Below, one piece after another: positions 17,675-45,612 of a stretch of DNA of 64,000 nucleotides (position 1 is its first letter; each line of letters starts with the position of its first letter). The notes beneath the pieces were generated by a model that had not been told where the DNA came from, did not search any database, and saw only the letters and a list, made by a program, of their open reading frames with translations. The DNA is from Lepidodermella squamata (taxonomy: Eukaryota; Animalia; Gastrotricha). Both the position numbers and the translations under genes were made by a program. Where the stretch lies: NCBI GenBank assembly GCA_047495785.1, contig JBLDXI010000009.1, positions 4,092,001 through 4,156,000 on the forward strand, read 5' to 3'.

Positions 17675-20600
17675 TTAATCATCAAGACTGCAAAGTGCAG
17701 CGACTCCGCGCACTATCCAGTGCCTTGAATCCTGATCAGTCGGGAAACTGATTGCCAGTACGTAGTTTGTGGAATGGCCAGTTGTTGACAAAGTACCACG
17801 GCGCGCCGATGTCTTGTAAACGGGGCAGGTGTAAGATGGTTTTGGCACAATTTCAGAAGCTATGGTCGGTTTCAATAGAATGGTCGGAACTGGGTCGAAC
17901 AGCACTTTCGGCAATGACTCGGCTAATTGCATGGCATTACGATCAAACCTCGCGCCTTCGAGAAAGATTCCGGTAACTAAGGCGCCATCTTCTGGCCTAT
18001 CCAAGCCGCAGGTTGACAACTCAGTCGGACCACATAGGGTGGTTGTAAGGATAAAATCGAACGTCAACTGGTTGATAGGAACCTGGTGGCGACGGGCGTA
18101 GTTCTGCAAAACGCCGGTCAAGAAGGATTGGGTGAAGTAGAAACCTGACAGCCAGAAAACTGGCGGTGGGCCATGCTCAATCCAATCCGAAAAGAATTTA
18201 AGCCTCAATAGCAGGTCAGCGACATAGGATCCCAGGGGCTTCAGAGATGGGTAAGATTTCGAAGCCCATAAGGTAGGCACACGACCAGCGAGTAGGGAGC
18301 CGAAAACTTCGTCGAGCTCAGAAGACATTACCACAAGACCTTTAATAGCCTTGGTCAAGCTTTGCAGGGATGAGCGAACCACCTTTGTCAGGCGATTAAA
18401 TCGGAACAGCTCTTGGCGAAGGACAGTGTTCATCGACTCAAGCCTAACTACAGGGTACTTCTTCATAACAGAAGCTACGTCGAAATCAGCCGGTAGCTTT
18501 GCGATAATATCATTCGCCAAATCGCTGACTGAATCAGCCGCGGATTTCCCGCCGGAACCTGAACCTGAACCAGCTGTTCTAGGCAGGGTGAGCAGAACCC
18601 CGGCGAATAGGTCTCGCGTTTCAGCCGCGTCTTTGGTAATATCTGCGTTATCATGCAGGCCAAAAACCTCAGGGGTTGGATTGAGAGGCAAAGCTCTGAT
18701 GTATTCTACATACGACTGATATGGGCCCTCCTTAGGCGCATAGTAATGGCCGCTTGGCGAGAATCTGTAAGCGTCATTATCGACTACGTCCTTATTGATG
18801 TACAGAGAAAGAATGTTCATCAAAGATCTGCGATCTTTGTCATCAGTTACACGACCACCATAATTACATTCTCCGATGAGATAAGTCAAAGCTGGTAACT
18901 GGAGTTCCTCGTAATCATTCAAGAACATAATAGTTTGCTTCAACGAGATACGTAAATCACTCTCGTTGAATTCGTAAGGGATGTTCCAACCTAATGGTCC
19001 GAACTTACGCCGCTCCTGAACAATGGCGTGGAAGAAGCAAAGACCGAACAACATCTTATGCCAACGAGGGCCGGTTTTACAGCTGTTGAAGAAAGCTGGG
19101 TCGGAAACAGGGTCATTCATGTACGACCGTAAAAGGTTCATTCTCAACCCTTTAGGAGGTTCATTCGTCATTTTCACTCCGTTCTGAAGTACTGATACAG
19201 GGAACTCATCTGACGGGTAGGATGTTAGCCACAACCTGAAATCTGGATGGGTCTTCTCAGGCACGATGACTTCCTCGCAAATGTACTCAAGCTTAGGCAT
19301 CCAAGATGTCGCCAAGTGGCAATTTTGAAGAACTACCCAATGCCCGTTTTGGGTCGCATCTTCAATCAACTTGGCTGCAACTGGACCTTGACCCTGCCCT
19401 AAAGAGATACTGCTCATCTTCGAAGTAGCGTAACCCTTATCAGTCGCAAATCGAAGTAGAGCTGCCATAGGGTCGGCACCAGGCGATAAGACGAAAATCA
19501 GCGGCGAGCAACAATTTGAGTCGGAAAATGAGCCCGGTAAATCGAAGGTAGGAGGTTCGATAAACTGAGGCCCTATCGCCTTAGAAATGAACATTTGAAC
19601 GGCTGGAACCATTTTGTCTGGTCTGAAGCATCTTAGAACCACCAGATGTTGCAAGGGTCCCAAATTATCGAATGGTTTCGGGTATTCTGCTGACTGAGGG
19701 GTGACGTTATCGTAGACACTTCTTCTCCAGGTATCAGGGTCTTTTTCCACAGATTGACGGAAATTAGCTAAACCGAACAAATCTGAAGCTCGGACAATTT
19801 CAGACCAAGATTTGTCGGAAAGCCATTCCTTAGCTGGATTAGGGTGAGGATTGTCTAAGGCCACGCCTCCAGTCAACAAGAATCTCCAAACGCTTTCTTC
19901 AACCTGTTTCCTACCCCTCATGATTCCAACGCAAAGTAGCAGAGAGAAAAGAAGTTTATCCTTCTCGAATAAAGACCTGCAAACATTGCGATAGATCGAT
20001 AGGGTGAAGTGGTCATTCAAAGTGTCAATGCGTGTCTCCAGAACGGCTGATTTTGTCGATTTCTCAATCGACTGATTGTAGAGAGATACGAACCAAATCA
20101 ACGAATACTGGTACATAGGTTCAAGATTCGCTAGATCCGAAATTGTAAAGAATAGCAAGGCTGAATGCCTAGCTACTGGTGTGTAGCCATTTCTAGCGTC
20201 ATCAATCATCTTAGCCGTAGCTGCTGCGATTTCCTCCTTAGCTTGGATTTCCTCGGAAAGGGTCTTGGAGGACGATAACACGTTAATAGCCGTTTCGTCC
20301 TCCAAAATGTTACCCTGGCTCGAGGATAAAACTTCAAGAATCTTGTCTTCAATTTCCTTTAACCGCCTCTTATTCTCAGCTGATTCTACAATCAATTGGT
20401 TCTTCTTCTCCTCAAGTTCTGGCCTTTCCTTAGCGACTACAATGCCAAGTAACTGATCTTCCAAGCCCTGAGGCGTGATCATGAAGTTGATCAAGCACAC
20501 CTTAACAGCCACCTCAGGCAGGTAATGAGGGTTACGAAGCCTGGTGGTAATGTAGAGCCGGAAATCACGTGAATATTCAATCACGTTATCGCCAAACTTG

Positions 20601-23600
20601 ATGTACTCAACACCTTGTTGTTTGAACACGGCTTTAAGGAGGACGGATTCGAGAACTGGGTCCAGCTCTTCGCCAACGTTTTCCATAAGGCAGGGTTGAC
20701 CGAACTGGATACAATTCTCGAGAATTCGGGTGTAGTTAGGATCCGAAAGTTTGACCACTTGCAAATGGTTATTTTTCTCCATGTTTTTGATCCACTTATT
20801 AGCTTGGCCCTAAAAACGAAAAAATAAGAACATGAAAATTGAAAAATCGAAATAAAAATGTTAATTTTACATTGAAAATTCAAATTTAAAATTTTGACAA
20901 TTTGAACAATTGAATTTTGAAATTTCAAAATGTCAAAAATGCATATTTTGAAAATTTTAAATTTCAATAAATTTCAAAAATTGAAATTTTGAACATTTTA
21001 TAATTCCAATTGTAATTTTAGGTTGAATCACTTACTTGAGGGTCGATCATTAGAGGCCACCGGCGGCTGTTCTTGATGACAATGCCATTATCAACACTGA
21101 ACGCATCGACCGGCAAGCCAGCAATATTCCACGACCGAATTTGAACCGCATCTCCCAGCGTCTGGCTAACAGAAAACGGTTCTGAAACCGGAATATTCGC
21201 CGCCGCTGTTTTGCGCTGCCAATCGTGGACGCACTCGTTACGGAAATCGACCGTAAACGCGCCTAAATAGGCAATAACCGCCGCCGAGATCAACACATCG
21301 CCGGTACAGTTCGAATATTTCTCGCCGAGAATTCGCGCCTCTTCCGTCCAACGCGTTTTCTCACCGCCCAAACCACCGATAAGCCGTTCGGCACGGTCTA
21401 GCTTCTTGCGGCAAAGTTCGATTTGCTCCTCCAACTCGGCTTTTTTCGCTGTATTTCGCTCGAATTCAGCGTTCAAATCAGCCAATTTGTCTAGAAGCTG
21501 CTGTAGTACGGCTCGTTTTTCCTGTAATTTAGCCTGAGCCACCTTAAATTCAGCCTCGGCTTTGGCTAATTTCTCCTTTTTCGGGGCAACAACCCTCGCG
21601 ACTTTATCGTAGGTATCCATAGCTCGGACCCACTTGCAAAGACCCTCGCAGGCCGTAGATGCGTTTTTGACGACTTCAGGGTCGAAATCTGGGTTCGGAA
21701 TGAATTTCTGCCGGATTCTTTGGATGAAGGGCGGCGAAATATTGTCCTTGTCATATTGCTTGAGTTTATCCAGCAATTTTACATCGCCGAGTAATTTCAG
21801 CGAAACTGACCAGTAGTCTTCAATCATTTTACCCGAAGCCGGGTCAGGTTTTCGCTCGGGTTTTATACCGAACAGCACGCAAACCGCCTCAAGGACCAAC
21901 TTCACGGTACCAGGTGGGTTTTTCATCGTTTTAACCACGGCAATATCGGCGGGTTTTAGGGTGTTCAAAGCGTTGATAGCCGCTTCTAACGCGGGTATAG
22001 CCTCGGCTAGATCGGCCTCGCATTCGGTTTTGATGGCCTGAGCAGCGGCCGAGGCTTCATTAGCCTCGCGTTCGTCGATGGCGACGATTTCTTTCTTCGC
22101 CTCAACTTCGACCGTATCTTGCTCGATGCGGATCATGAGCGCCTCGGTTGCGCGGCTAGTTTCAACGAGTTGCGGCTGCAGGTCGTGCAACTCGACTTGC
22201 ATAATGGCGATTTGACTCGCGGCAAAATCAAGTTTCTCGAGACCCGTCAGGTACCTAAAAATCAAGAAAAATCAGCTCATAATCCTGAATTCAAAAAATT
22301 TGAAATTTTGAAAAATATATAAAAATTAAAACATTTTTTTTTCAATTTTTAAAAAAATATTAAAAATTTTCATTACAAATGTGAGTCAAAATAATAATAA
22401 TTTTAAAAAATTGCCAAGAAAATTAATTTTCTCATAACTGGGTCATAATTCAATAAATTTGAAATATTTTTACCTTTGTCTCATGGTAGTCAATTCGTTC
22501 CGCTTTCTTCCCAAAAGCGTTTTGAAGGTCATAATCAGTTCCAAATAGCTAGTCGGCGTCACGTAATTTTTGCGACCAAGCGCGCTGTAGTATTTCTCGG
22601 ATAACAGTCGAACCGATTCGTGGAAATACTTGCACAACGACGTGATAGCCTCTCGCTGCGAATCCTCCAGCTCAACGTCCTCGAAAAAGCGATGCGCAAC
22701 CATTTCCAAGGCATCTTCCGGCCACGGTTGGAACCAATCAATTGTACAACAATTAATCAAAGACGGGAACTGGCGAAGTCGATTTCGGAAGGAATCACCG
22801 ATGGGCGACATAGCCAGGACAATGTGCAAATTTCGCCTAACTCGCTCGATGAAGTAGTTGTACAGCGCCATGGGTAAAGCGTCGATTTTACGATTTTCTT
22901 GCTTAGCTGCTTGTTGCATCTTATCGCAAATTTCAGCTCGCTCATCACCTGAAAAAATTCAAAATCAGAAAAATTAAATATTTCAAGGTGTGAATTTGAG
23001 AACAAATTCTAAAAATTTACCGTAAAATGTGTCCCAAAAATAGTGAATTTCAATTTTCAAATTTTCAAATTAAATATTACTCAAATTCCCATGTTTCGAA
23101 TTTTCAAAAAAAAAATGAAAAATTTAATTAAAACTAAAACTCATTCAACTCGTGAAATCTCGTCTCCACTCGCCTAAAGGCTCGCTCCGACTCGATTTCA
23201 CTCGTTTCATTCGTTTTACTCGATCTATATTTCGTGCTACTCGAAAATATAGACTCCTACTCATACTATATCATACAAATATGAAAAGGTTGGGAAATTC
23301 CCGCTCGTTTGCTCACCTGCGAATAAATTCGGCAAATCGCCGGTGTTCAAAATCATGCCAACATCTTCCATGTTCGATTCGTCCTTGATCTGAGTATCAG
23401 CGAAGAAAAACACCGTCGGCCGACCTGTCATACCCGCTTTTCTCAGCAGCCGCTTCATATCTTCCCTCCAGTCGTTTTTCGAGTAAGACTTCGACATTTC
23501 AATCTGGAACAAATCGTAATCAGCCATGAAAGCGGCCAATCTCGCGGCCGACTGCCGGCCCGACCCGCCGACGCCGACAAGTAGAGCATGGCCGTTGTCC

Positions 23601-26600
23601 TGTTTCAGGACACGGGCGACTCGGCTGACGTGTTCGATGGCGAATTTGAACATGACAAGGCGCATGGGCGTTTTGCTCATCTGGTTGTAGTCTTCCAGGT
23701 AGCGCTCGAAGACTTTTGTCATGTCGCGAACGTCCGGCACTTCGTCGTACAGTTTTTTCTCGCCTGTGTGATAGTCACCGAACATGAGACCGCGAACGTC
23801 ATCGTCGATAACGCGGCCTGATCGCGACAGGTGGCTCAATACCTTGTCGATACTCAATCTGGATTCGGAAAAATGGCACAACAGGTGAAAATCGCGCAAA
23901 TTAGGCTTAGAAACTCAAGATGTGATTTTTTAGCAAATAATTGTTCAGTGATAGCATACGCTGTAATGCGTGAAAATTTACGATATTTTAAGTTTGCCTC
24001 GGAATTTAACCGTTTGCAACCGCATCGTATTCAAAGAACTCACGAAACAAAAATATTTCCAGGTGATATTAAGGTGAGATCTAGTCAAATAATCTAGTAT
24101 CTTCAAAGTAGATATTGTTATTCCGTTCTTGCTACCTTCCAAACAGTTTACCATCTGCCCCTCGTTTTAATTTGACAGAGTTTGAAAAAATATGTAATAT
24201 TTTCTCAACTCTGCTTCCAAACTAGAGAAGATACGCGAATGAAGAGAAAATATAAAAATTGACCAGGATTCTAACACTTCAATTTTTAGGAAAGTTTGGA
24301 GCCATACTGCACACTGCGCTAAATTTGCGCATATTAAAGATCGAGATGCCAAGAAAGAATTTTCCCTCAACGTCACAATTTTGCAGGGACTTATTTTTAC
24401 AATTATTATTATTATCATAAAGAGCGCAGCTTACGCATTAGCGCCCTGAGGAAACACTAACAAAGGCGGAGAATACATACCTTAGACACAAATTATAATT
24501 CGCAGATGGTTAATTAAGAGATCTAAGACTTTTCGACCCCCACCTACTAGTCTACTACCTTAAATAACAGTTTCAGAAGAAATATTCAATATTTTCTAAT
24601 ATGTATCTAATATGTTGTTATTAAATTGGAGATATCAGAAAAAGAAGAAAACTTGAAGATTGAAGGAACGACAAATAATAAAACAGGGTAATTGCATTAT
24701 TTATAAATTGAGGTAGATATGTCCACAAATTGCTTGTCGACGCTCAGCGCTATTCAAGCTCGGAAATTTTTTATAATTCAAACAAATAAATTTAAAAGCT
24801 AAAAGCATCAAACGTTCCAAATGTCATTTTCTCGACAATCTGCTAGTTTTATCAGCAACTATCAGACTTGGCTAGTTCTCAAGCACGACGAGCATTCTTT
24901 GCAAAAGCTTCCAAGGCATAATTAAAACAAAAAATATGCGTTCGGTGATCAAGTGATTGTTTTCGAACAGCACAAAGCAAGTGACATCGTCAACACGAAC
25001 TATTCATTTCCCCAAGCAAATTTAAAAATTACTTTCATGAACGAAAAATCGCATTAAAAATCAATTTGCCGAGCTGTAAAATTGTTGATAATAAAATTAA
25101 AATGAAGATAAAAATTGCAAAAGTCTAGGAACTACTAGAAACAAAAGTTCATCCCAAAGTCAATTAAAATTTACCCTGGACTAGGTTACATAAAAACGAT
25201 TCGAAATGTATAATTACATGAAAATAACCGGGGTTTATATACCTGAAATTGTGTTGACACTCGTCTTTGACCAAGGTGAAAAAAGTTTGCCGATCTTTGT
25301 CATCGGTCAACCGGTCGTAAAACACTCGATAGACCTCATGAATCCACAGCCTAATGAGCTTCTCCTGCTCAGAACCCAATTGAGCCGGGCCCGCAAGCAA
25401 ACAGCCTCGAACAACGCGCGAAAAGTCTCGCAAATTGAAAACATAATGCGACTTGGTAGGCGTGGGTAAGAATTTAAGAACAGCCGTTTTATACACGGCC
25501 AGCGTCGCGGCGACCAGCATGCGGCCCGACCGCGCAAACGTCGAATCGAAGCCCTTCTTCGCGAAATGCCAATCGGTGATGGTCGAAAAAATGCGCGTCA
25601 TTGTCGTGTCGTCGAATTCATCGATTGAAATGCAGTTGAAATGACGCGTCAACCGGCTGGTTATCTCATTTCGGCCACCCCCAGGCGGTCCCATAGCCGT
25701 GATTAACAGCACGTCCTGGAGGAAAATTTTCGATGTGTCCTTCTTATCGTACCAATGGCCGTGGTCTAGCCACTGCCGGAGTAGTTCGATCGGCGGCTGG
25801 GCGCCCCATTTCTCCTTAGCCGGCATGTTCAAATCGTCGATGAATGTGATGGTTTTCTTACCCAGGGGTGGGCCGTAGACACCCTTACGGCGACGGTCTA
25901 ATTTAGACATGATTATATCCTGAGTTTGAGATGCAGTCGTTCGAGCCGAGAAATTGATTGTGTTTATCACAAAACTTTCTCTAGGCATTCGCATCAGAGA
26001 TGATAGGGTGATTTCCGATTTACCCGTACCAGTCGGGCCGACAATCATGAATGGAATGTTATTTTCGATGTAGACATTCAGGAAGAACATCTGCCGGGCT
26101 GTTTCAGCGGTTGGCACGATTAAATCGTTGAATTTAGCGTCGGCGGGGAAGGTTGGCGCTTGGATGGTTTCCGTCCAGTCTGTCCAAACGCCGGCGCCTT
26201 TCTTCTCGAAGATGAAATCGTAGATTGTGCCGCGTTCTGGGAACACGTTGCTCTTGTTCATTTTGCAGCTTTTCGGCTTTGGATACGTGTTGTCGAGCCC
26301 GTTGATTAGATTGCGGAAGTAGACATCGAATTTCTTGCGAGATTCCATTAGCAGCATGCCGCTTACTGTCCACGTCAACGCGAATAGGAAAAGGCCTTGA
26401 AGCCAAAGGGTAATCTGAAAAAAATTAAAAATTGTTAAAATGAGGACGTTAAAAACTAAAAAAATGGAACGGGCTACAAAAATTACACAAACTTAAGGAG
26501 GCTATGACAAAAAACCAGTTTCAATTCCGAATTATTCTAAAATTCGCGGCAAATTGCGAACTCGACGAATTCATACCTTAGACACAAATCAAGGTACCCA

Positions 26601-29600
26601 TGACAACATACAAGTCGCAATTTTTCGACAAAATAAATTTCAAAAATTTCTAACGATATTCAAATTTCAAAATTGATACTCGAACTTAGCTGCCATTTTC
26701 ACACGGGTTTACTTTCAAAATAAAACCACAACACATTTTCACATTAAGCTATTTTCTATATGAAACGCAAGTTAACACAAATTATATCAGGGCAAGGCTA
26801 CTCTGATATTACCAAGGTGTCCGGATCAACGCGCTTTATAGACTGAATTTCGATTGTTATTTTTTTAAAAAGCTGGATTTATTCGATTTTTTTCATCAAT
26901 TTTTACCTGCTGCCCAGTGAGGCTAGTATCGCTTTCTTCATCCGCTATTTTGATTTCTTGCATCATGCAAGACATGAGGCGCATCATCGTGTGAACTGCG
27001 TGAATTTCCGAAATGTTAACGAACTGTTTGCATTCGTGTTGGATGAAGGACAGACTGGGCGGGATGAGCCATTCGAACAAATCATCCAACATCTCGCGAA
27101 TTTCGGCGGTCACATTTTTTGGCAGCGACGAGTCGATCCACGACTTTTTCAACGGCCGCCAGCCGAGATTGACCGGCTCCAGGTAGATCATGCCGCAACG
27201 GGAGACTGTCGCAGGACTGGCCTGTTCGAGATCAGCTGGTTCGAAGATCAAGTTCATGGCGTTTGACATTTGAATAATTTCACCAGACATCAAACACAGC
27301 TTCTTGTTATCGTCCAGTACCGTGTTCATGTTTTCAATCTAGAATGAAATATGTAAAAAAATTAGAAATATATGCGGCGAATTTCAAGTTCAATTCGATT
27401 TCAGACCAGTTAATTTCAATTTCAATATCCATTGAAATTTGATAGAAATTTAAAATATTTTTCATTGGATAGATCAGTGTTTCCAATGCAGAAATTCGAC
27501 GTTGACGGTATATTTTTGATACTCATAATTATCTTTGGTCATAAAGAGCGCAGCTTACGCATAAGCGCCCTGAGGAAACCATAACAACGGCGGTGAATAC
27601 ATACCTTAGACACAAATTATAATTCGCAGATGGTTAGCTACAACTTCGAAGAATAATTGACCCCCATCTACTAGCTAAATGCATCAAAGAGTTCTACCTG
27701 TTTTGAGCAATAATTTGTTAAAAAATTTAGCAGCAAATGCAATATAAAATTCAAAACAATCAATTATCAATATAAACAATGGAAATTTTAATTTAACTTT
27801 GAAAATATAATTAAAAGTGCATTTATCCTAATTTTCAAAGAAATGTTGGCATGACCTTTTATATTCTATCAAAAAGCTGTTATAAAATAAAATAAAATTA
27901 CCCAAACTGCGTCGACAGGGCCATCGAGGAGGATCCATTTTCGCTCAGGCGTTGGACTCGATGCGTATTCTCGGAAAGTCGTCGCCAAAACTCCATCAGT
28001 CCACTCATGCGAAACCGGGTCAAAACAGCCGTACAACTGGCCCATCGTAATCGCCTTCGGGTTGATAATTCGATAGAGAACCTTATTTTCACCCATCAAG
28101 CCAGCGGCATGCAAGTCGGTAAGGGCTTCGCTCAGAACTTGATAGCCAACAGTTTTGCCACCCATCGGCTCGCCGACAACCATCAAACCGTGACGAACTA
28201 AAATCATCTCATAGATCTGAATAATTTTCTCAATGTGCCACGGAACTGGCTGCAACTGTCGTTTCGCCATGTTGCTCTTCAACGCCTCGATGAAAGCGGT
28301 GTAATCTGGCGGTTCAAGAGTGACGCCCATGAATAAATCGCCCATAATTCCCTCGAATAGCGGGATGTCTTGCTGCAGAAACTTCGGCAGATTAACGTCC
28401 ATGATAGCTTTCAGTAGAATCTGAGCCTCGTCCTGATCCGGGTATTTCAGCTTCAAATTACCGGCGGCTGTTAGTACGGATTTCACAGCTCGCATACCGT
28501 AGTCGTAATGGCTCTGGGAACTGAGCTGTTCCGAACAAAGTTTGTAGACGTTGACAATTTTTTCCGAGAGTTCTTTCGCGCTGAGAAAACCCATCGAGTA
28601 AAGCGAAATTTCGCCGATCATCGCGTAGTCGGGTACCATCATAGCGACACTTCGGAAAAGTACCTTCAGGTTATCGGGAAGCTCTTGGCGACCGGCGTAA
28701 CCAGGGTTCATCGTGATGAACTGAAAACATAGAACAGTAAATTAAAGAATTGAAATTTCAGAGTAATCAAATTAATTTCGGTTTTTTAAAGCAACTGGTG
28801 CTGGTGCGTATTTACCATTGCGCCTCCTTATTCGATGACACTGGGGTAACGGCGTGCGTCTCATTTCGTTCACTCTTAGGCAATCAGTTTTTTGTCACAA
28901 GAAAGGACGCAGCTTACGCTTTAGCGCCCTCAGTTCCACATGGAGCTATCTGGAGTCTGATACATACCTTAGACACAAATTTAAATTCGCAGATGGTTAT
29001 TAATTTTCTAAAAGGGTTAAAACCTGGGTTCTGAGAGCTAATAACTAAAAATCTAATGGTTATGTGATTGATAAATATTGCTTAAATGCCATGATGATAT
29101 TTAGGAAGTAAAATAATGATAATTGAATAGGTTTTTAATACATTTCAACTAAGAATTTAAATTGATAAATTTTTTCCTAGTGACATCAAACAATAATAAA
29201 TCGATCACTTGTTGATAGCATTGACTCTATCATTTACAATATCTATTGGGTATATGCTATGTTTTAGCGATTACAGAAGGCCTTGAACAGGTGAATAAGG
29301 GTCCAAACTCAGGTGGAAGTATTTTCATTTTACTGCCGCCAGGCGAACTCAAAAAACGTATAGCTACAGAAGTTTTCTTCAATTTTTAAGCTTGATAGTA
29401 ACTTGCGTTCACTTTTTAGAATGGGAACGTTTATACTCGATGACCTAGATTTTTTGCCTAAAATAAAACACGTTTCTATCAATCACACACTTATTTTTTG
29501 CAGCGATGCTGTTTATTTCTACGATTTGATCGTCGTCGTTTCTATCCGCAATAACATTATCGCTGTTTTTCTATGAAAAATCCACCCTGCATATATCGAA

Positions 29601-32600
29601 TTATATTGGTCTGAATACAAGCTTCGAATGGCGTCAAGTAGCCACGATTATACGGTTATAACCATCGACGGCAAGGAGATCAGGGTGAAATCTGAATATT
29701 TAGCTAGGATCATTGAGGATCAAGCCAACGATTCAAGCGAAGAGTCATCACCAAGCATGAAGACTCAGAGGAATGATTCCGATAGCGAGTCAGTTACAAC
29801 AAATTCGACCCCTGTACCTAAAAAAGACAACCACTTAGATAAACCGTCAACTTCGAAGCAGCCGGCTGTTAGCACTACTGGACGCATGAAATGGACAACC
29901 GGGCGAACTCGTCAGTTTTTGACCGAATGTCTGAACAGGAAGAAAGAATTGCACGGAAAAGAAAGTAAGCCCAATAAATTTTTCCAATTTTGACAAAATA
30001 TCGATACATTTTTGCGACATATTTAAATTTTTTTTCCATTTTTCAAGGTACTCAGATGCGCGTTTTTTGCGAAATTGCGAAGTCACTGCCGTTCGCTGCC
30101 TCGAACCCGCAGTGCTTGAGAAATCGCTACAACGCCATGAAAAGAAAGTACAAGCTGCACATCGAAGCTGGGAAACAAATCTCCGAACCAATCGACGATG
30201 ACCTGGGCAGTATACTCGATCTAGCCGGGCAATTATGGGACGATGATCCTAGCGTGCGGCCTCAAAAAGGAGAGCCAAAAGCAGTCGCTGAGAAACCTGC
30301 TGAGAAAGAGAAAGAAATTGCGGCGCCGAGGCGGCGGCTTAACAAGAGATATGGGCCGTTTATTCAAGATTTGATGACCAAGCGAAGCACTAGCAATGTT
30401 GAGGCTATTCTCGAACTGATGGAAAAGAAGTATGAAGAGGACAAACTCCGAAATGACCGCATTCTTGATTGTTTGCAAAAACTGACTGAGCACATTGTTT
30501 CAAGTAAAAAATGAAAATATTGATTTTTGCTATCGGCGTTTTCTGTTACATTTTCGTTTACTCTCTGCGGGTCTGCGTGATTTTTTTCACAGGATTTCTA
30601 GAATTTAGAGGATAACGACGGCTAGCTATTATTGACGAGACAATTATCGAAGCTGACTGAATAAAAAATGAGAAAAATCAATTTGCTCTCAACTGAATTT
30701 TTTACTATTTTTTTAATTTCACCTGTAATTTTATGAGAGAAATTCCAGGAATAAGATTGGACGATTCCGGGGAAAAGTTGAGCAACGAACTAATCTATCT
30801 TCACACGAGTTACATGAACTAGTTTTTCTCACGTCTTTGTCCCATTATTTGTTTGGGCTTTCACTGGCATTTCAGTTTTTCAGATAAAAGTGAAAAAACA
30901 TGTTTCTCGTGAAATTGAGGAGATCAAATCATTCGAATAAATTAAATTGTTCAAAAATCGTAGACTTATGAATTTTATATTAAATGAATATCTCAGAAAT
31001 AATTTTCATTTCAAAAATAATCTATAGGAATAAAATAACTCACCACGCTGCAGGTCGGATTGAGGGAAAGATCGGTTCCTTCGAAAACGAACCGCTTCGC
31101 CCGCGCAATGATCGCCTGTTGAATGGTCAAAATCTGTTGAGCAATCACACTCAACACCTCGAGCTCAATGCGGTTGAACTCGTCGAAACACGCCCACGCA
31201 CCCGCCTGGGCTAGACCCTTGAAAAACTTGCCCATCGCCTTGTAGTCCAAGCCATCCGAGCAATTGAACACAACGCACTGCTTAGCTAGGGCTTTAGCTA
31301 AATCTTTTGTAGTCTCAGTTTTCCCAGTACCGGCTGGTCCTTCCGGGGCGCCGCCGAGGTTCATCTTCAACGCGCCCATCAAGGTTCGATAGCATCGATC
31401 TGTCAATGGTGTGACGACTAAACGGCCTGAATTACCCAGGTACTCATAGCCGTACTGCAGCTCGGTCGTTATCATGTGTACATACATCTCCGTGTTCCAA
31501 TAGTACCGCATCTGCGACATCCAGTTGAAATCCTGGTTTCTAGTCACATTCGCCGCGACTAGTTGCTTGACGACATCTCGCGCGTGTACGTCTAACACGG
31601 TCAACGCGTTCATTGTGATGCGGTGGTTGGGCAGCAGTGGGCCGCGCACCATGCGGACGCTGTCGTCGATCTGGTCGCAGCAGCGTTGGTAGTAGTTTTT
31701 CAGCTCTTGCCCGGTTGGGTCGTCGAAGCAGGCGCTAACTTCAGAGGTCCAGTAGGCCTGGGACACGCAGATGACGACCTGACCAGGCCATTCGAGCACC
31801 CACTGGCGCCGCGGTACTGTGGTGTAGGATCCCATCGAGTCGCCGATGACTTTGCGAATGCTAGAAATCATTACCTCTTCGACCTAAAAAACAGAATTAT
31901 TATGAGAAATCGGGCAAGAAAAATCAGAAAAATTGTAAATTTCAATTCGGCTAAACGCGATACAATTTCGAATAATTTTTTGAAATTTTCTTTATTTCAC
32001 GGAAATTCTTGTAGCTTATAGCTTGCCATGAAAGAATCATTGGGAAGTAAAGCATTGTGAGTAAAATCGTGAATTTCTTGTATTTCCATCAGTTCCGAAT
32101 TCGATTTTCCTATATTTTTTAACCCGCAATAAACTGGTTTTTTTTTCTTTTTTTACCGAGTTCACTTTGAAAATAATATAAAAAAACGAGTAGGTTTATA
32201 AACCTGTAAAAAAATTGCAAAATTCTGTAGGAATGCGGAAATGACAAAAATGACAAAAATTCATTAAAAAATGTGGAAATTAGAAAGCGATTGAAATTTC
32301 GGGAATTCGGGCTTGTTTCTGTATTCTCCAAGAATCGAATACTCGCGTATTTTCCGATTTTTCGATTCAACGAATTAATCATGAAATTCCCGAACAATTT
32401 CGAGGGAATTTTTGGCATAATAATAATTCAAAGACTATCACGATTTTTCTTACCTGAAGAAGCCATTTTTCGACCATGCCTTTCGCTTTACCCGGGTTGA
32501 CTTTGTAAGCGAGCGGAACCAGCTCGCCCTCAGCCGAAATTATACCCGTAATTTCCTGGATATTGTTGAACTCGAGCAAATGAATGCCCTCGAAGCATTT

Positions 32601-35600
32601 TTTCAAATGCGGCTGAACTCGAAGCGGGTCTTTTGTCTCGGACAGAATTTCGAGAAGTTCATCGTTCGACAGGAAGAAGAAACGCGGGAAGTAGAGCCGC
32701 TTCTTCTCCAAATAATCGTTTAATCCCCTCTGAATGCCTTCCAATAAGTCATTCGCCTCTCGAAGACGCTTAACCATGTTAGGCTGGTCAGTAGCCACGA
32801 GGCAGTTCGTGTTTTTAACAGCTTGGGACATGATATCTCGCCAGGTTGAATCGACAATGCCGAAAGACCGAGTTTCCTCCGGCATTTGTGCCATAATGTC
32901 CTCGGAGCTGAAAATCGGCTCAAGGTAAAGCCAAGTTGCTTGAACGTTCAGCCAAGCGTCTAAAATGTCCTGCATATCGGTCAACTTCATCTGCCACTCG
33001 CGGGCTTCAGTCTCAATCGGCTTGATAAACGGTGATCCCATCATAGTTTGAGCCTTGATGATGTGATCGTCGAGCAGCAGCTGAATTTCATCGATAGCTG
33101 CGAGAATTTTGATGTCTGAATCGCGGTATGGCACGAATTCGAAGCACATACTCGTCCATTCTGACTTCATTTTCGTCAACGATTTCTCCAGCGCGTGTTC
33201 TTTACTCGCAGCTCCACTGATTTCCTCAAGCTTTTGGATGAATTTATGCAAACTCAACTCGAGCATTTGAGTTAGGGTGGTTTTCTCATCCGGAGTTATG
33301 TCCAACCCTACAACTTCACTCATCTGCTCCCAGTGGCGTAATTTCAAACCAGGGTTGCAAATAACTTGCATGAGAGGCAGATGGGCCTTGAATCGATCGA
33401 TTCTCGCGCAAGCCTGGTCGCAAACGCGGCGAGGTTGCGGGCTGTCGGCGAAAACTTTGCCCAGCTTATGCAAAATTCGCCACATTTCTCCAACGTCGTT
33501 TTCAATAGTTTCGGCATTTTGGTCCTTAAAAGGTCCGTTCAGCCATTGGTCCGATTTGACATGATATTCATCTAGAAATCGAAAATAAATACAATTTTCA
33601 ATTAATTTTACGAAATTAACTTCGAAAATTTAAAAATTTGAATTTAATTTAATTTGAATTTTGAAAATTTTCAATTAGTTCTTAGCAGTTTTAGTCTTGA
33701 ACTTACAAGTTGTTTTCCAAAGCTTTTCGTAAGGATCTTTCGCGATGAAAATTTCTTGAAGTTGAGGGAAAGAAGTTTGCTCCCATTCGAGCAGCTTCTC
33801 CTCGATGTTGATCTGGTCGAGATCGCTCTGAAGCTCATCGAGCAGCTTGCATAGAACATTCATCTTCTCAACGCATTCCTTCATATCTTCAGCCGTCATT
33901 AAATCGCGCTTTTTGAACCAATCCAACTGCTTGCCGGCATCTTGCAGGCGCTCCTCGAACACTTTGACGCGCTTTTTCAAATTAACCTCGGCTGTATCGC
34001 GTTTATCAGACAATTTTGTTTGAGCTGATTCGAAGACAGCACGCATTTTGAAAGGCCATTGAAGCACAGTCTTGTTCAACGCAATATCATCAGCCGGCAT
34101 TTCGGAATAATCCAACAGGAACATGAGACGTAAGAACGCCTCTTCAACCTTTTCTTTCAACGTGTAAAACGTTTTATCCATCGATGTATTCAAATACGTT
34201 GTCAATTCGACGAGTTCAGCCGTTGTCGCGGGGAGTGAGTTCAGTTTATCGTTCATTTCTTCAAAGCTGTGCGATACATCGCGATTTTCCTCGCGATTAT
34301 CCGTCATAGCCGCTGACGTGATTCGAAGCCGAAGCGATTCAACAAGTTGTATCATTTCATAATTCAAACCCTCGGCATAAAGGCAAAACATTTGAAGAGG
34401 AACGGTTAATCGAAGCGATGACAGTTCGATCTTCATTTGTCTCAGACTATCCAATTTCGTCTTGAACGCCTCCAATGAATGAGGCTCGGCAAGAAATGAC
34501 GTCACATTGCGATCAGCTTTGCCGTTCAACAAGTCTATATAATTTTTATAGACAGTAAGATATCTCTGTGGGCCGATCGTATTCTTCCGATAACTTTCAA
34601 GAGCTTGGTCAACAGCTTCAGTTACCATCAACTCGTCTTTAGCCGCTGTTCTGATGACAAGTCCAGCCTCTCGCAAGCCAGGGAACAGCTCAGATTCAAC
34701 GCGTGGTATCCCTTGGGAAGCTGCGACTATTTCGAGAAAGCATCTAATTAAACAATCTCGAACGTCCTTGAACGACGGTTCAAAGCCGATCTTCGGCTCT
34801 TCGACGATCAATTTAAGAGCTAGAAGTGGTTGTTGAACAAATAAAAGCTCATCGTATTCGCCCGTGAAATCATTTCCAATAGCATATTGTTCGAAAAATT
34901 CCACGAGATCTTTCAATGAGTCGGCGACAAGTTGGCGAAGCTGGTGAGACATCAGCGCAGCGACGCAGCTGAAAAATTTCTCAGCCATCACCGCATTGTC
35001 ATTCGCACCTCTTGGTACCAAGTGCCACCAGTATCTCTTTCGATTTTCGAACAAAGAATCCGCTGCAGCTCCGATCCACGCAGTAGCAAGATGATCGTGA
35101 AGCTCTTTACAATGCTGCGACACCAATTTCTCAAATTCACTAGGAATGAGTGGCAAATTCGATTTTGCAATATCGTCAACGCGCACAAATCGAAGATGCG
35201 CGAATTTTGAGCTGAATAATTTTTGAAGATCGATAACAGCAGCATTAGTAACGAAGAGCTCCCTTGAAATGGCTGAGTGAGACTCAACGTAAGATTCGTG
35301 CCATGGAACTGGTGCGCGAATGACCATGTGTGGTGTTGACCGTATAACTGAATTGATGTGCAAGCGCTTTCTCTCCAAAGGATCTCGCAAAACGTAATTA
35401 ACCATTGCGCATCGCATACTCAAATCATAATCTAGAGAAGTCTCGTATTCAAGCGATGTGAAAACTGGCCGTAGACGGGTGGTTGAACGAAACTTTTGAG
35501 GTACCAGCTTGAGGATAGATTCTTTCTGTGACAATGGTGGGTCGGCAATCATGTCCTTCGTTATGCCTTGTTGAACGTAATAGAAGTAGCGCTCCACGTC

Positions 35601-36607
35601 GTCTTCAGTGGGTAGACCCACTCGTTGCGTCTCCTTATCTTCATCTTGCAACATGCGCTGCCTTTGAACTATGGGGCTCGTAGGACGATCAGTTTCGTCG
35701 TCACCGAAAATTCTGTGATAGTAGTTTGCACTCTGCTTCTGTTGCTTCGGTTTGGATGAGCTACTAGCTTTCGATGAAAAGGGCCTCTTTTGTTTTTCTG
35801 TTTAAACAGTAAATGTGAGACGTTCACCAAATGTGTATAGATTATTAAAACACGAACGTTTGAAAGCGATTTGATCTTCTATGGTGGGCTGCTTTCTCAT
35901 CAAAGTTAAACTGAGACCTTTGGCGCTTGGACTGTAGTTAGCTCCAATGCTATCACTCGGCTGGTGAGCAAATGGTTGCTCGGCATAAGGTGATGCCTTT
36001 GTGAATGAAGCTTCAGCTTGCATGAGCGGTGGATGATACGCATTTCGGTTGACAATCTAACAAAATGTAAATTTGAATGCGAAGCCAGCCAAAAATAAAA
36101 CCATACGTAGTATAAATCAGAATCAAGACCTTTCACCCCTTCAGGAATAGGACGCAGCAAAGGATATGGCTCACATGGCAGATTAGAATAGTTGTACTTC
36201 GGCGTTTCATGATCATACTGAAAAAGCAACAAAGATAGTAGGAGAAGAGCTTCTCTTGGAAATGGATAAAAATGAAATAATGCGCATGAAAGTAAAATGA
36301 TGCGTTCAGCGTTAAACTGTTCAACTGAAGCAAACTGAGAAGTTTGGTGGCATCAGTGGAATCAAACCTCGATGAATGATTTCGGCCGTATAACACATGC
36401 ACTCTTTGCCCTTGGAACTGTCTTTGGCCGAGTAACTACAGCGCTCTTTAATACAGGAAATTGAAATCGGAAGTCGCTATTTGTTTCATGGCTTGGGCTG
36501 AAGATCCCGAAGCCGGCAAGAATCAAATACTTAAGAAAAGTTCATACCTTAGCTCTATCAAGAGGCCTCTCCAAACGAATGTTGAGCTTCGTTTTCCCGG
36601 TATACAT
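17675..36607 (-). CDS. DNAH3: Axonemal inner-arm dynein heavy chain, DNAH3-like; 5' exons (above ~36250) uncertain
   Basis: P-loops [24 protein letters not shown] and GVGGSGRQS, stalk coiled coil, C-terminus [11 protein letters not shown], and N-terminal [19 protein letters not shown] resembling DNAH3; exons joined by GT-AG introns. Confidence 0.9.
24416..24511 (-). ncRNA. Candidate spliced-leader (SL) RNA gene, copy 1, in dynein intron
   Basis: Minus strand AACCATCTGCGAATTATAATTTGTGTCTAAG|GTATGT...AGGGCGC-TAAT-GC-GTAA-GC-T-GCGCTCT; repeated at 27540-27635 and 28901-28998. Confidence 0.6.
26521..26607 (-). ncRNA. Candidate SL RNA, divergent type (copy 4), in dynein intron
   Basis: Shares the 18-mer ATTTGTGTCTAAG|GTATG with the other copies; upstream TACCTT pairs perfectly with AAG|GTA; downstream hairpins and an AATTTTAG Sm-like tract; ends approximate. 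Confidence 0.45.
27540..27635 (-). ncRNA. Candidate SL RNA gene, copy 2, in dynein intron
   Basis: 91/96 identical to copy 1 with an identical leader; shares an upstream 16-bp element at the same spacing. Confidence 0.6.
28901..28998 (-). ncRNA. Candidate SL RNA gene, copy 3, in dynein intron
   Basis: Leader differs only in its hairpin loop (TATA to TTAA); middle region fully diverged; 3' GNRA hairpin kept with pairing-preserving changes. Confidence 0.6.
29628..30514 (+). CDS. Myb/SANT-like (trihelix/MADF-type) DNA-binding protein nested antisense in a dynein intron; exons 29628-29964 and 30048-30514
   Basis: An 83-nt GT-AG intron joins [22 protein letters not shown] to VFCEIAKSL...[16 protein letters not shown]; short C-terminal coiled coil ([17 protein letters not shown]). 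Confidence 0.7.
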
Positions 36608-39659: not shown

Positions 39660-42600
39660 ATGTTAGCCATTTTACTGCTGTTCAACCTGGTCAAAGCAGA
39701 TCCGTCCGTTCTCCACGCCCGTGAGTTTAATAATCCGGGCTTTGATTTATCGAATTTCTCAACACTGCGGGCTGTTCAATCGCAATGGGGCCAAACCGAC
39801 ATGCCTTCCCTTGCGAATCGGCTATATTACAAATTATTCGTTGTTTCTAACTACAATCCACATTTAAGGCCGAGGGGTCGTTATAATAAGCGAGTTTTAG
39901 AGGTAAAACTCGGCCTAAAATTGACTCAACTTCTCGATGTTGTAAGTTTAATTTCTAGCGATTTTTCTCGAATTTTTATTCAATTTTTGTTCAAGGATGA
40001 GAAAAATCAAATAATGACAACAAACGTATGGCTACGTCAGGAATGGTTTGACGAACAGCTACAATGGGACCCGACAGAATTTGGTGGCATTAAGGAGCTA
40101 TTTATCCCGCCGGAAAAATTATGGCTACCTGATATTGTGTTGTACAACAACGCGGATGGAAATTACCAAGTGACTTTGATGACTAAAGTCGCGTTGGCCT
40201 ATACTGGGCAAATCGTGTGGGAACCGCCCGTTATCTACAAAAGCAGCTGCCCTATTGATGTCGAGTATTTTCCATACGATCAGCAACATTGCCACATGAA
40301 ATTCGGAACGTGGACTTATGACGGTAAATTTTCTCGAAAATCCAAAATTTTTCAGAATAAATTTTCGTTGAACCAAATTTCCAAACTGGTTAACAGTCTC
40401 AATTCCGAATAATTTTGTTAAATTAGGATTAAGCTCTCAAAATTATGGACAGTCCTTGTAAAGAAAATTGCGTAGAATTTATTTGACATTTATTTGGTTT
40501 TTCTAATAATTAAACTTGAAATGTCCAAAAGTTGAAATAAAAGCTCTTACGAGCAAATTGAATATCCGAAATTTGGTTCCATTGAAAGTAGGACCCGTCG
40601 CTATTTTTATTTTTATTTTATTTTTTTATTTTTTATTTTTTAAATTCTGATCTATTTGTTTAGGTTTGGAGGTTGATTTGAGGCATACACAAGACCCTGG
40701 GAACGACACAGCCATTAAATACGTTGAAGACGCGATTGATATTTCGAGTTATTACGAATCCGTAGAATGGGACTTGTTAGCTGTCCCAGCCGAGCGTCAT
40801 TTAATCAAATACGAATGCTGCGAAGGTATGAATTATTTTTCCAAAAAATGAGAAAAAACTCAAATTTCGTTCTTTTTCAGAACCTTATATTGATATAACT
40901 TACAATATCACGATTCGTCGTAAAACTCTGTTTTATACGATAAATTTGATCGTTCCATGTGTTGCGATCTCATTTTTGACCGTTTTGGTCTTCTATCTGC
41001 CCTCGGACAGTAATGAAAAAGTAAAATATCTCAAAATTGCAGTTGCATTTTTTGAGTTTTTCAATTTTTTCTATAGGTTACTCTCTGCGTGTCGATTTTG
41101 CTCTCGTTGACTGTGTTCTTTTTGCTGCTCGCCGAAACCGTTCCGCCGACGTCACTCGTCGTGCCGCTAATCGGGAAATATTTGCTTTTCACAATGTTCC
41201 TCGTCACGCTTTCAATCGTGCTAACCATTATTGTGCTCAATGTTCACTTTCGATCGCCTGAACTCTACAAAATGTCGCCGTGGGTGCAAATCGTCTTCAC
41301 GGTCATGCTGCCAAAGTGAGCTCTTAATTCTTATACTTGTTACCTAGAATAGCATTATTTTATTTTCTATCAAAAATGGACGGGTCGCAATTATGCAAAT
41401 TGAAAAAGGGTCTTGAAGTGAGTGTCTCCCGACTCTGCTTATTTATCTTCTAACAAGCGAACAGGAACGTTTGAAATATCAATTCAGGTATCAATTTATA
41501 AATGAGTAATTGCAATGTCCACATTCCAAAAAATCTGAAAACTTAAGTGCCTGAAATTCGCGAGTCCGAGAAGAAAACATTGATTGAAATCATTTACATC
41601 AAATTTTCGATAAACGCTCCCATCGGAAACTTAGGGGAACCACAAAATCACTCTTGGTTGTAGTTGAAATTGTTGAAGCTTGCGATTGGGGAGATTTTCC
41701 AACATTTAGCATTTTGTTTCTTGAAATATCTAAAATAAAACATTTGAGAATGCAATGCTCGCCAGCGCTAACCGAACCTAGGAAATTCACCAAGTCACTC
41801 GTTCTGCCGCCCACCCCGCGAAATGAGAAATATTGATGCTTCCTTTCATCATGCGACCGCTTCGTCCTCGTAACATGCTAACATGAACCAAAGGAAATGT
41901 AATGATGCGGCACTCACTGCAAACTTTATTGATTAACGATTGGATGTTAAAGATATTAAGCAACGGATATTATAATTGATTGAAGCTTTAAATTGATGAT
42001 TCTGCCCATCTCTGGCATCTCACGCGACTCATCCGCCTCAGCTCATATTTGTCGATTGCAAGAACTACTAGGCTTTCAGGCATTTACACGACCTCATCCC
42101 CATCCAGCTGACGCAACTATAATTATAGCCACTTGGACAAAGCTGAATGCCGCGCGCCTGTTCCTGTGGCAGTTCTCGGTTGCTTGGCTGCGCTTCTGCT
42201 TGGCCGCTTTGAGCTCCGGCATTGCTGAAAATGGCTGATGAAACCTGAGCAAAATAACAGTAGAACAACATGATATTCATATATGAGCGAATAAACCTAC
42301 CAGAAGAGCTAGGATAGCTGCAAATTTAAGCATTTTCCCGTGGAGAAAAACTTGAAAATTATAGGAAGAAAACTTTAAAACGAAAAGATAGCGAATGATG
42401 TGAGATGCGCTGCTCATCTCGAAAAGATGTTCGTACTGCTGGGCAAACAAGATCGAACGCCAAACTTGAGGTGAATTCACGGACCGCTGAATGTCCCATC
42501 TTTCATGCTTCTACGCCATACTGCCATGATGATGTGAGATGCGCTACCCGTCTCGGAAAAATGTTCCTACTGCTGGGCAAATACGATTAAATGCCTAAAC

Positions 42601-44523
42601 TTGAGTTGAATTCACGGAGCACCGAATGACCCATTCTTCATGCTTCTACGCCATACTGCCGTTACTGGCACCACGTGATGAGTATTCAGCTAGCTACCTA
42701 AGAATAATTAATAGGAAGAAAATGATGAAATAAAGATGATGCTATGTTATGATGATGATGATAAATACTCATATGAAATGCTCAATTACTTCGCCTTTAC
42801 GAGTAAGCTGCACCTCAGTAGGGTTTTACCTCGTAGCTTAGAATTCAGCTTAGAATGTACCAAAACCGTTATTTGATAAGTACAGTGAAAGTTGTCTAAA
42901 CCGGGCTAAGGTCGTGCCAGGCAAAATCGTCCGGTTTAGAGAAAGTCCGAATTATTTTAAACACCGGACCGGCACGAAATACAGTGAAAGCCCGAATTTG
43001 CGCCCTCGGATTTTCCGCCAATTCGGATTTTACGCCAGGTTTTCGCGTGCCCCCCCCCCCCCCCCGGCGAAGGCAATGTAAAAGATGCTAAAGTACATCC
43101 GATTTCAAGCCACCGGATTTTACGCCAGGTTTTTTCGCGCAGCCATAGTAAGCCAAAACACATCCGATCTTACGCCAAACTCGGATTTTTGCCAAATCGT
43201 GCCAAAATTTGTATTTACGTATATAACGATATATCAGTTTCACAAGTTTATGAGTAAATATGCATGGCAAAGCACCTTAATTTTGCTAGTAAATTCATGA
43301 AACGAAGTGAGCAGCAATGCCCGCTCATGGCATAACAACTCCTCGGCAGTTTGGAATGCCCGAAAACAAATTAGATATTCAAAAGCAGCGCAAAAAGTTG
43401 GGGTGTATAGCCAATTAGCGCGCAGTTACATTCCAAAATGAAGAAGAAATAGATGCGCTAAGTTGCTTTCAAGTTTCAAGTGCGTTAAACCAAGGCGCGC
43501 GTAACATCAGCAGCGCTCGCGATTTGACGCGCCCCCATGTGGGTAACTGCTCTTTTGTTGTAGTCACCCGTGAACCGCGCGCACACTTATTATTTTTGCT
43601 TATCAATTGTGTTCACAATTGGAAGTTTTAATTTTTTTTCAAAATGTTGAGGCTACCCTTGTCGGGCGGTGCTGGCACTCTCTTCAAAATTATATGAAAA
43701 ATTGGCCTTTTATTGCATAAACCGGACTTCGAGCCCCAAATCCGTCCAGTTTATACCACCAGTCCGGTTTAGACAACAAAATTATAAAGAAAAGTCCACA
43801 CTTTCGGATGGGGCCACCCGAAATCGTCCGGTTTGAACAACTTCCACTGTGCTTTTTTTGATTATATTATTGCTTCGTATGCCACAGAGTTCTGCTAGTT
43901 TCCCGTCCAAGCGTGAAACACGACGAAGAAAGCGAGGACGAACTCGACTATGACCTCGAAAAGCTGACATCCGCCCTGAAACCTGTTCTCAACAACTTCA
44001 CGCCGATTTCCCAAACTCGCAGCAAAACTTCGCACAACTTCGACGCGAGTCACATTGTCGATCGCGGGCCGATTCGGGGTGCGAGGCGCAGCAAGTCTGA
44101 AATGGCGTCGCTGTGGTCGAGCCGGCGAACGGCGAGCCACGAAACGAACGATCTCGGCCATTTCGAGGGGACGTTTTTCAACGAATCTGGCGTTGAATCC
44201 TGCGTCTACGGCGAGTTTTACAACCAGTTTCCAGAAATTCGGCAGGCTGTCGCTGACATCGAAGATATTGCAGATCGGTTCAAGAGCATGAGACATCACA
44301 CAAGGGTAAGTTAGATTCGTTAGAACTTGAATTTCATTATTTTTGTGTTTCGAAGCTGAAAGAGGAGTGGAAGTATGTGGCGATGGTGCTAGATCGGCTT
44401 CTACTTTACATTTTCTCGATATCTTGTCTTCTCGGGTTTTTCGGCATCATTCTGCAGGCGCCAACAATTTACGACAGCCAAACTAGTGATTTGATCAGCA
44501 AATTCCGACATGAATTCACTTGA
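39660..44523 (+). CDS. Nicotinic acetylcholine receptor alpha subunit, cation-selective type; large intron 41316-43887
   Basis: [13 protein letters not shown], Cys-loop [66 protein letters not shown]. Confidence 0.95.
42068..42333 (-). CDS. Secreted 4-Cys toxin/AMP-like prepropeptide, copy A (69 aa); exons 42333-42301 and 42244-42068; nested in the nAChR intron
   Basis: [11 protein letters not shown]|[58 protein letters not shown]; 56-nt GT-AG intron; downstream AATAAA near 41925-41930. Confidence 0.8.
42883..43849. mobile_element. Non-autonomous Tc1/mariner(pogo)-type DNA element in the nAChR intron
   Basis: Imperfect terminal inverted repeats CAGTGAAAGTTGTCTAAACCGG / CCGGTTTGAACAACTTCCACTG, 5' flanking TA, internal GTCCGGTTT and CGGATTTTACGCC subrepeats. 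Confidence 0.6.
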
Positions 44524-44814
44524 TGAACGAATTCTTAGCTATAAAATGTTGGCAAGTTATTACGACTTGTGTTATTTTTTTGCTGTGCCTTTTCTTCATG
44601 CTTTATTTACAATTTATACAACAACACGTTTTCACTCGATCTGTACTGCGATTTGACTGAACGAAGGAAGATCTCTTTAAAATGTTACCTATGCCGTTTC
44701 TGCTATCTTCACTCAATAAAACTGTTTACATCGAATCGGGAATGTTTTCCGCAGTGTATGCTTCGGTCTTGAGAGGCCTTGCTGAAATTCTTCCAGGGCA
44801 ACTTCACAATACTA

Positions 44815-44886
44815 GGCACGGTGGCTCAATTGGGGCGTTGCGTATCTAAGGGATATCGCTCGGGACTGGGTTCGAGTTCTAGTGCC
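44815..44886 (+). mobile_element. tRNA-like head of a probable SINE or tRNA pseudogene
   Basis: 72 nt with A box TGGCTCAATTGG, B box GGTTCGAGTTC, T-arm and GGCAC/GTGCC acceptor pairing, but an irregular anticodon arm. Confidence 0.45.
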
Positions 44887-45340
44887 GGAACCAAGATCGA
44901 GTCCTTTCTTGGCCCCGCGGTTGTTTTACCAATCCACCGATTTGCAAAGGAAAAAATTGGGAGGCTGGGAGTGTCAGCTAGATTGCAACGGTCGATTCAC
45001 GTTACTACTTCTTCACCTTCACAAATTCAGTCGTGCGCCAAAACTGAGTTCAACAAAAGCTGTATGCTGTGTCTATTTTAGGCGAGTCGTTAGGCGATGT
45101 CGGCCACCCCGCTAAATGAGAAAAATTTCCCGTCCATCCTACAACCGCTTCTTAACTGCTTGCTAGCGTCAACCAAAGGAAATGTTGTGATGCATCACTC
45201 ACAGCAAACTTTATTATGGACGTTAAAGATATTAAGCAACTGATGATATAATTTATTGAAGCTTTTAATTGATGATTCCGCCTATCTCTGGCATCTCACG
45301 TGACTCATCCGCCTCTGCAGGCATTTGACGATTGCAGCTA

Positions 45341-45612
45341 TCAGGCTTTCACGCACGTACATGTTGTGACACCACCTGTTGTGACGCAACTGCTCTTATA
45401 GACGGGATATCTGCAGTCTGCACGAGCGGGGCCGCGCGCCTGTGCCTGTGGCAGTTCTCGGTTGCTTGGCTGGGCTTCTGCTGCTCGGTCAGCGGCAACA
45501 TTGCTGAAAATGGCTGATGAAACCTGAGCAAAATAACAGTAGACCAACATGATATTCATACATGAGCGAATAAACCTACCAGAAGAGCTAGGATAGCTGC
45601 AAATTTAAGCAT
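45341..45612 (-). CDS. Secreted 4-Cys toxin/AMP-like prepropeptide, copy B (71 aa); exons 45612-45580 and 45523-45341
   Basis: [11 protein letters not shown]|[60 protein letters not shown]; same 56-nt intron and flanks as copy A. Confidence 0.8.

Follow-up and report, generated by a model that had tools for sequence, protein, structure and literature searches.

The spliced-leader (SL) RNAs of flatworms are 78-103 nt long, carry leaders of 31-36 nt and hold the splice donor in the first stem (PMC12582326). The rDNA/5S neighbourhood is a usual place for SL genes (PMC7346339, PMC12460157), and a canonical Sm site is usual, not universal, in SL RNAs (PMC6053224). In C. elegans, failed 3' processing of an SL gene lying sense to coding exons can result in chimeric, translated RNAs, the sn-mRNAs (PMC6390993). 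An earlier note had proposed that a 64,000-nt stretch of the Lepidodermella squamata genome (hereafter the window) contains four candidate SL RNA genes within a dynein heavy-chain gene. The features found in our analysis are the following.

17675..35654, minus strand: host gene, axonemal dynein heavy chain of the DNAH3 type (5' end not fixed)
23859..25242, minus strand: dynein intron with copy 1 (1384 nt)
24416..24511, minus strand: copy 1, candidate SL RNA gene (leader 24511-24481, donor from 24480, 3' hairpin 24447-24421)
24535..24550, minus strand: upstream block of copy 1 (-39 to -24), a candidate snRNA-type promoter element
26415..26906, minus strand: dynein intron with the site-4 fragment (492 nt)
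26572..26592, minus strand: site 4, a 21-nt fragment consisting of the 3' end of a 30-nt-type leader and the donor, not a full gene
27339..27901, minus strand: dynein intron with copy 2 (563 nt)
27540..27635, minus strand: copy 2, candidate SL RNA gene (leader 27635-27605, donor from 27604, hairpin 27571-27545)
27659..27674, minus strand: upstream block of copy 2, at the same offset as in copy 1
28721..31043, minus strand: dynein intron with copy 3 (2323 nt)
28899..28998, minus strand: copy 3, candidate SL RNA gene (leader 28998-28968, donor from 28967, hairpin 28930-28904)

Three full copies proved real. They lie on the minus strand, with their first bases at 24511, 27635 and 28998, and each shows the architecture first described for them: a 31-nt leader with no conserved acceptor on its upstream side, a strong donor (AG/GTATGTAT), a middle that varies and a hairpin at the 3' end, together ~92-96 nt long. 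The 18-mer around the donor occurred exactly 4 times in the window, when 0.05 occurrences would be expected by chance even if 3 mismatches were allowed. In addition to these copies, two further full genes, designated L014 and L007, were found in metagenome contigs of related animals. Similarity began at AACC in all five full genes, which gives the family a sharp 5' edge, and other genomic contigs parted from copy 1 exactly at 24511. The donor octamer GTATGTAT was invariant in all five, the middle being free to vary. A GU donor directly following a short leader with no paired acceptor, in a gene that is short, present in many copies and sharply bounded at its 5' end, is what is expected of an SL RNA gene. 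The flatworm SL RNAs resemble the copies in length, in the leader of ~31 nt, in the GU donor, which in the copies lies within a predicted first stem, in the 3' hairpin, likewise predicted here, in a leader end that is conserved next to a middle that varies, and in the occurrence of same-strand clusters less than 5 kb apart whose paralogues differ within a genome (PMC12582326). However, the flatworm leader ends in AUG, whereas here it ends in AAG and contains no AUG, and the UVUUUGG Sm-like motif that flatworms keep before the last hairpin (PMC12582326) has no conserved counterpart here.

The fourth site, previously taken for a divergent full copy, turned out to be only a fragment of leader end plus donor. 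It matched the neighbouring copies over 18 nt and the 30-nt-leader type of the relatives over 21 nt. Since the AACC start and the family hairpin were absent and the covariance model of the family gave no match there, we ruled it out as a full copy; it is a remnant.

The host gene was identified by exon-by-exon search, and the reading frame was checked by translating 30 nt on each side of every junction. The four introns carrying the copies and the fragment were consecutive, had clean GT-AG ends and were flanked by exons that joined in frame, and all four sites were oriented sense to the dynein gene. Thus, the arrangement of one site per intron in four consecutive introns, all host-sense, proved correct. 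This layout is that of intron-processed snoRNAs, and the strength of the candidate SL donor, which equalled that of the host dynein donors, would also suit repeated alternative micro-exons of dynein. Still, we consider both origins very unlikely. No conserved C/D or H/ACA boxes were detected, antisense matches to the 18S, 5S and 28S 3' end of relatives did not exceed 9 nt, and the Rfam check, at both gathering and E-value thresholds, returned no relevant family; on these grounds the snoRNA reading was rejected. The micro-exon reading was rejected because no acceptor upstream of the leader was conserved among the copies, and the pseudo-exons of copies 1 and 2 contained stops in all frames. Moreover, the family also occurs outside introns, in L014 and L007. 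The intronic layout is probably incidental rather than tied to dynein, the introns offering spare space in a compact genome.

The flanks, which the earlier note had described as largely unrelated, were not wholly so. Copies 1 and 2 were 88% alike across 136 nt, and 15 of the 16 positions of their upstream block were identical, identity being lower on either side of it. Copy 3 had a middle that differed from those of copies 1 and 2 and no match to the upstream block. Being multi-copy, dispersed and clustered in introns, the sites could also be regarded as a short mobile element (SINE or MITE) or as retrocopies of a small RNA, which we consider most improbable. A retrocopy would lack the upstream DNA that copies 1 and 2 carry, conservation was patchy instead of uniform, and a homologue occupies the rDNA spacer of another animal. 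Flanking direct repeats of at least 7 nt, a conserved poly(A) tail, terminal inverted repeats and a B box were all sought in vain, and SINE and MITE were rejected for want of target-site duplications, tail, inverted repeats and a Pol III box.

Both outside genes belong to the rDNA spacer, with 5S as a neighbour. L014 is a complete homologue whose leader measures 30 nt and which is ~140 nt away from a 5S gene, at the 3' end of 28S. L007 is a paralogue whose 29-nt leader is different, its start, donor and hairpin base being unchanged. The metagenome search gave genomic matches only; 15 fitted the pattern, 13 of them by chance. A looser pattern yielded 38 matches in viral contigs, which were rejected as family members because they scored 25 bits or less, in comparison to 60-108 bits for the members of the family. 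Because the family sits beside 5S in two related animals, the proposal that these genes are dispersed in host introns rather than arranged in tandem or linked to 5S could not be upheld. The homologues in the rDNA spacer beside 5S and the presence of several leader types are features shared with the 5S/rDNA-linked SL genes (PMC7346339), including those of chaetognaths (PMC12460157) and C. elegans sls-1 (PMC6390993). Copies 1-3 differ from these in being located outside rDNA, in introns of a protein-coding gene, and in a leader that matched neither the papers searched (its end was queried together with 'spliced leader') nor any Rfam family.

The search of sequencing runs revealed DNA-like contigs only, with nothing relevant in run X2. 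Contigs with a depth of ~1900 and ~2050 fitted the leader with a 1-nt gap, their consensus strings being compared with it by eye, and the flank contigs had depths of ~50-110. Run X1 was possibly made from the source sample and is therefore not independent. The contrast in depth fits many copies of the family and is not to be read as a count. Copies 1-3 would appear to be outliers of a large SL RNA family.

This raises the question of whether the copies in the window are silent orphons or pseudogenes of such a family, the working leaders being supplied by the rDNA-spacer arrays and other clusters. We regard this as unlikely, while giving it some weight. There is a clear remnant, site 4, among the copies; their leader has 31 nt, one base more than in the relative linked to rDNA and in the contigs of greatest depth; copy 3 is devoid of the upstream block; and the upper hairpin is weakened in copies 1 and 2. 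On the other hand, the leader, donor and hairpin are almost invariant while the middle and the flanks diverge, which points to selection, and the upstream block of copies 1 and 2 has been kept across a less conserved spacer.

Folding gave a mixed picture. The whole-copy folds of copies 1-3 were no better than those of shuffled sequences (z -0.3 to -0.7 and +0.3). The 3' hairpin alone was significant in copy 3 and in both outside homologues (z -3.3, -2.8 and -3.5, respectively) and weak in copies 1 and 2 (z -1.4). In the RNAalifold consensus, which holds the donor stem and the 3' hairpin, the 5' ACC paired with GGU at the donor. Of the sequence changes earlier thought to preserve pairing, TATA to TTAA is a change within a loop and no test of pairing, and the 3'-stem change of copy 3 consists of two one-sided G-U/G-C swaps. 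Two-sided covariation was thin, amounting to one pair change in the L007 paralogue only, in a register set by hand.

No canonical Sm site (RAU3-6G) followed the donor; AATTTG, inside the leader, was the one Sm-like motif seen. This does not exclude the copies from SL RNAs, since the accepted SL RNAs of Oikopleura dioica and Paulinella micropora also have a donor and stem-loops, the latter being predicted in our copies, and no RAU3-6G after the donor (PMC6053224). Copies 1 and 2 share with them a pyrimidine-rich single-stranded middle; however, there is no relation in sequence, and a pyrimidine tract, even in a relaxed form, is not common to all of our copies. The missing Sm site would also suit another snRNA-like RNA (U7-like, SmY-like or new) whose donor-like motif does not act as a splice donor, and the leader end resembles the Sm-like site of U7. 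We find this improbable. The Sm-like site AAUUUGUCUAG was absent, the 3' hairpin, which in U7 directly follows that site, lay 33-38 nt beyond the donor, the L007 paralogue has lost the U7-like motif and retained the donor, and Rfam gave neither a U7 nor an SmY match. U7 snRNA was thus rejected on the missing motif, the distant hairpin and the blank Rfam result.

Taken together, the best explanation, which we hold to be likely, is that copies 1-3 belong to a large family of SL RNA genes with a trans-spliced leader and are at work, or were until recently. This reading is partly supported: it fits every DNA-level test made, and from it we infer expression and trans-splicing. Short DNA blocks carrying SL genes would have been copied into the roomy dynein introns, where each copy would most likely have an snRNA-type promoter of its own upstream and not depend on dynein for its transcription. 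The product would be a capped RNA of about 92-96 nt, closed by the 3' hairpin and presumably bound by Sm proteins, the first 31 nt of which the spliceosome may join, via the AG/GUAUGU donor, to the unpaired acceptor of other pre-mRNAs. The C. elegans sn-mRNA case differs in involving an SL2 gene upstream of a gene and the loss of Integrator (PMC6390993), whereas here the genes are intronic. An exact look-up of 10 ORFs and searches with a phosphodiesterase exon and a single-exon orphan gene revealed no near-identical transcript-derived protein from which an mRNA 5' end might be reached, and neither did the comparison of a trypsin with all representatives, in which the best identity was ~42%.

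It is also conceivable, though rather doubtful, that the dispersed genes with the 31-nt leader form a functional class separate from the rDNA-spacer leaders, SL2-like and serving downstream operon genes, with no Sm site in the intron part; given their intronic position and sense orientation, they may at the same time be internal promoters whose leader is cis-spliced to the next dynein exon. The exon following copy 2 and that following copy 3 each have an in-frame AUG 9 nt in. To our knowledge, an SL2-like class for downstream operon genes has so far been known only in nematodes.

Our literature search for gastrotrichs or Gastrotricha with spliced leaders or trans-splicing retrieved only an unrelated review on Euglenozoa, and the papers on the L. 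squamata genome and small RNAs made no mention of SL trans-splicing. Copies 1-3, as assigned here from their sequence, probably represent a known kind of gene and process with a new member, in a phylum for which we found no earlier report. SL trans-splicing is patchy across animals, and its single or repeated origin is debated (PMC7986045). Flatworms, to which gastrotrichs are thought to be closely related (PMC6468455), do trans-splice, and so a gastrotrich SL family would make the ancestry of trans-splicing in that branch of Spiralia testable. Such a family would also provide, in its leader, a 5' primer for full-length cDNA.

Three full elements of a candidate spliced-leader (SL) RNA family were found on the minus strand, starting at 24511, 27635 and 28998, each with the 31-nt leader, donor, variable middle and 3' hairpin described in the earlier note. 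The leader reads AACCATCTGCGAATT(AT/TA)AATTTGTGTCTAAG and is followed by GTATGTAT, the variable middle and a hairpin beginning with AGGGCGC. An 18-mer spanning the donor has exactly four occurrences in the window, where 0.05 would be expected. The GC content of the window is about 42%; that of the L. squamata genome is 43% (122 Mb in 157 contigs at 83x cover; PMC11660948).

24416-24511, minus strand: copy 1
27540-27635, minus strand: copy 2
28899-28998, minus strand: copy 3
26572-26592, minus strand: site 4

Across 136 nt, copies 1 and 2 show 88% similarity, and copy 3 has the same leader and hairpin with a different middle. The fourth site had been taken for a divergent copy, but it is a fragment judging from its sequence, since it has just 18 nt in common with the full copies and escapes the family covariance model; its match to the 30-nt-leader type seen in related animals covers 21 nt. 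An imperfect hairpin downstream of it (26520-26575, minus strand) is unrelated to the family and folds no better than shuffles (z -0.7).

Conservation is patchy, the leader, donor and hairpin being kept and the middle and flanks free, a pattern expected for a structured RNA gene. In the consensus fold the 5' ACC pairs with GGU at the donor, enclosing a small leader hairpin, and the 3' stem has 7 bp. Folded whole, the copies were not better than shuffles; the 3' hairpin alone was significant in copy 3 and in both genes found outside the window, and not significant in copies 1 and 2. Pairing changes among the window copies are one-sided, and one two-sided change occurs in a distant paralogue. 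Structural support for the elements is moderate. The elements contain no canonical Sm site 3' of the donor, a lack for which the SL RNAs of Oikopleura and Paulinella are precedents (PMC6053224). Upstream, copies 1 and 2 retain a block of 16 nt at -39 to -24, and the stretch between it and the start is less conserved. The block, missing from copy 3, is a candidate snRNA-type promoter element.

The host gene, according to Pfam and protein comparison of the exons around the elements, codes for an axonemal dynein heavy chain nearest to DNAH3 (best full-length matches 65-67% identical). Each site falls in its own GT-AG intron; the four introns are consecutive, have lengths of 2323, 563, 492 and 1384 nt and are four of the five largest dynein introns mapped, and the exon joins across each are in frame. 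Dynein micro-exons were ruled out because the offsets of upstream YAG sites differ between elements and every pseudo-exon in copies 1 and 2 contains stops in all frames. Comparison with Rfam matched the element to no family, as the earlier note had left to be checked, and this together with sequence features rejected a snoRNA or another snRNA; a mobile element was also rejected, target-site repeats being absent. The largest dynein intron also holds an antisense two-exon ORF (29628-30514, plus strand), Myb/SANT-like by eye and without a Pfam match. Other features of the window were as follows.

42068-45612: duplicated small, prepropeptide-like genes, from the first reading of the sequence
50380-50900: short AT-rich tandem repeat
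57302-57373, minus strand: tRNA gene, the sole Rfam match in the window
58318-62200, plus strand: two tandem phosphodiesterase/ENPP-type paralogues

A pattern scan of metagenome contigs gave two real matches, L014 and L007, both from related animals. The former carries a full homologue whose leader has 30 nt; its middle differs, and its hairpin is the same except for a GAAA loop in place of GUAA. This homologue lies near the 28S 3' end, with a 5S gene about 140 nt away. Across the 28S end and 5S, L007 is about 80% alike to L014; besides these two it contains a second gene type, four leader-plus-donor fragments and an 18S gene. The second gene type has the same AACCATC start, donor and hairpin base and a different, 29-nt leader. 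Directly after it in the rDNA spacer (minus strand, 2581-2436) lie the four 32-nt fragments, head-to-tail, without the AACC start and 3' hairpin. The leader gene is on the strand of 5S and opposite 28S in L014, and opposite 5S and on the strand of 28S in L007, which implies that the spacer was rearranged between these relatives. The 18S gene of L007 (minus strand, 2004-1; about 2.0 kb, 1347 bits) is very divergent, whereas the 28S end and 5S of the same contig look ordinary and agree with those of L014. This 18S may have truly evolved fast, or the contig may be an assembly chimera, a choice that bears on the taxon of L007. Linkage to rDNA/5S and the presence of two gene types were observed in these relatives' contigs only.

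Contigs of the public sequencing run X1 were compared with 24300-29150, and their cover of introns and exons was DNA-like. Single-copy depth was about 80-110. Contigs at depths of about 1900 and 2050 agree with the leader apart from a 1-nt gap, some contigs part from the window sequence exactly at the AACC start, and those departing just past the donor octamer rejoin the hairpin base, by eye, at copy 1's spacing. The picture suggested is of a family of many copies, some in high-copy arrays, with the reservations that depth does not give a copy number and that the source sample may be X1 itself. With the rDNA/5S-linked homologues, this removes for the family the contrast drawn earlier between dispersal in introns and 5S-linked arrays; the intronic array is itself not special.

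The anatomy, genomic context and family membership of copies 1-3 are known here from genomic DNA. Each is most likely a small-RNA gene in its own right, with a product of about 92-96 nt, the first 31 nt of which would be trans-spliced onto unpaired acceptors in other pre-mRNAs. Transcription of these copies, a cap, binding of Sm and the trans-splicing itself are inferred from what characterises SL RNAs (PMC7986045, PMC12582326), and the main alternative is that the three copies are silent. CAG or TAG acceptor-like sites at 49321, 55279 and 58300 (plus strand), 14-20 nt ahead of the first ATG in three genes, are possible trans-splice acceptors. Short duplications at the DNA level probably spread the copies, as suggested by the upstream DNA common to copies 1 and 2 and the lack of target-site repeats at both. 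Local duplication would also account for the common orientation of the four sites, which has a chance of 1/8 if they are independent.

SL trans-splicing is a well-known process, of which the searched literature held no report in Gastrotricha; the leader of copies 1-3 appeared in no searched paper and no Rfam family. Since gastrotrichs are placed near flatworms (PMC6468455), a gastrotrich SL family would be of real comparative interest.
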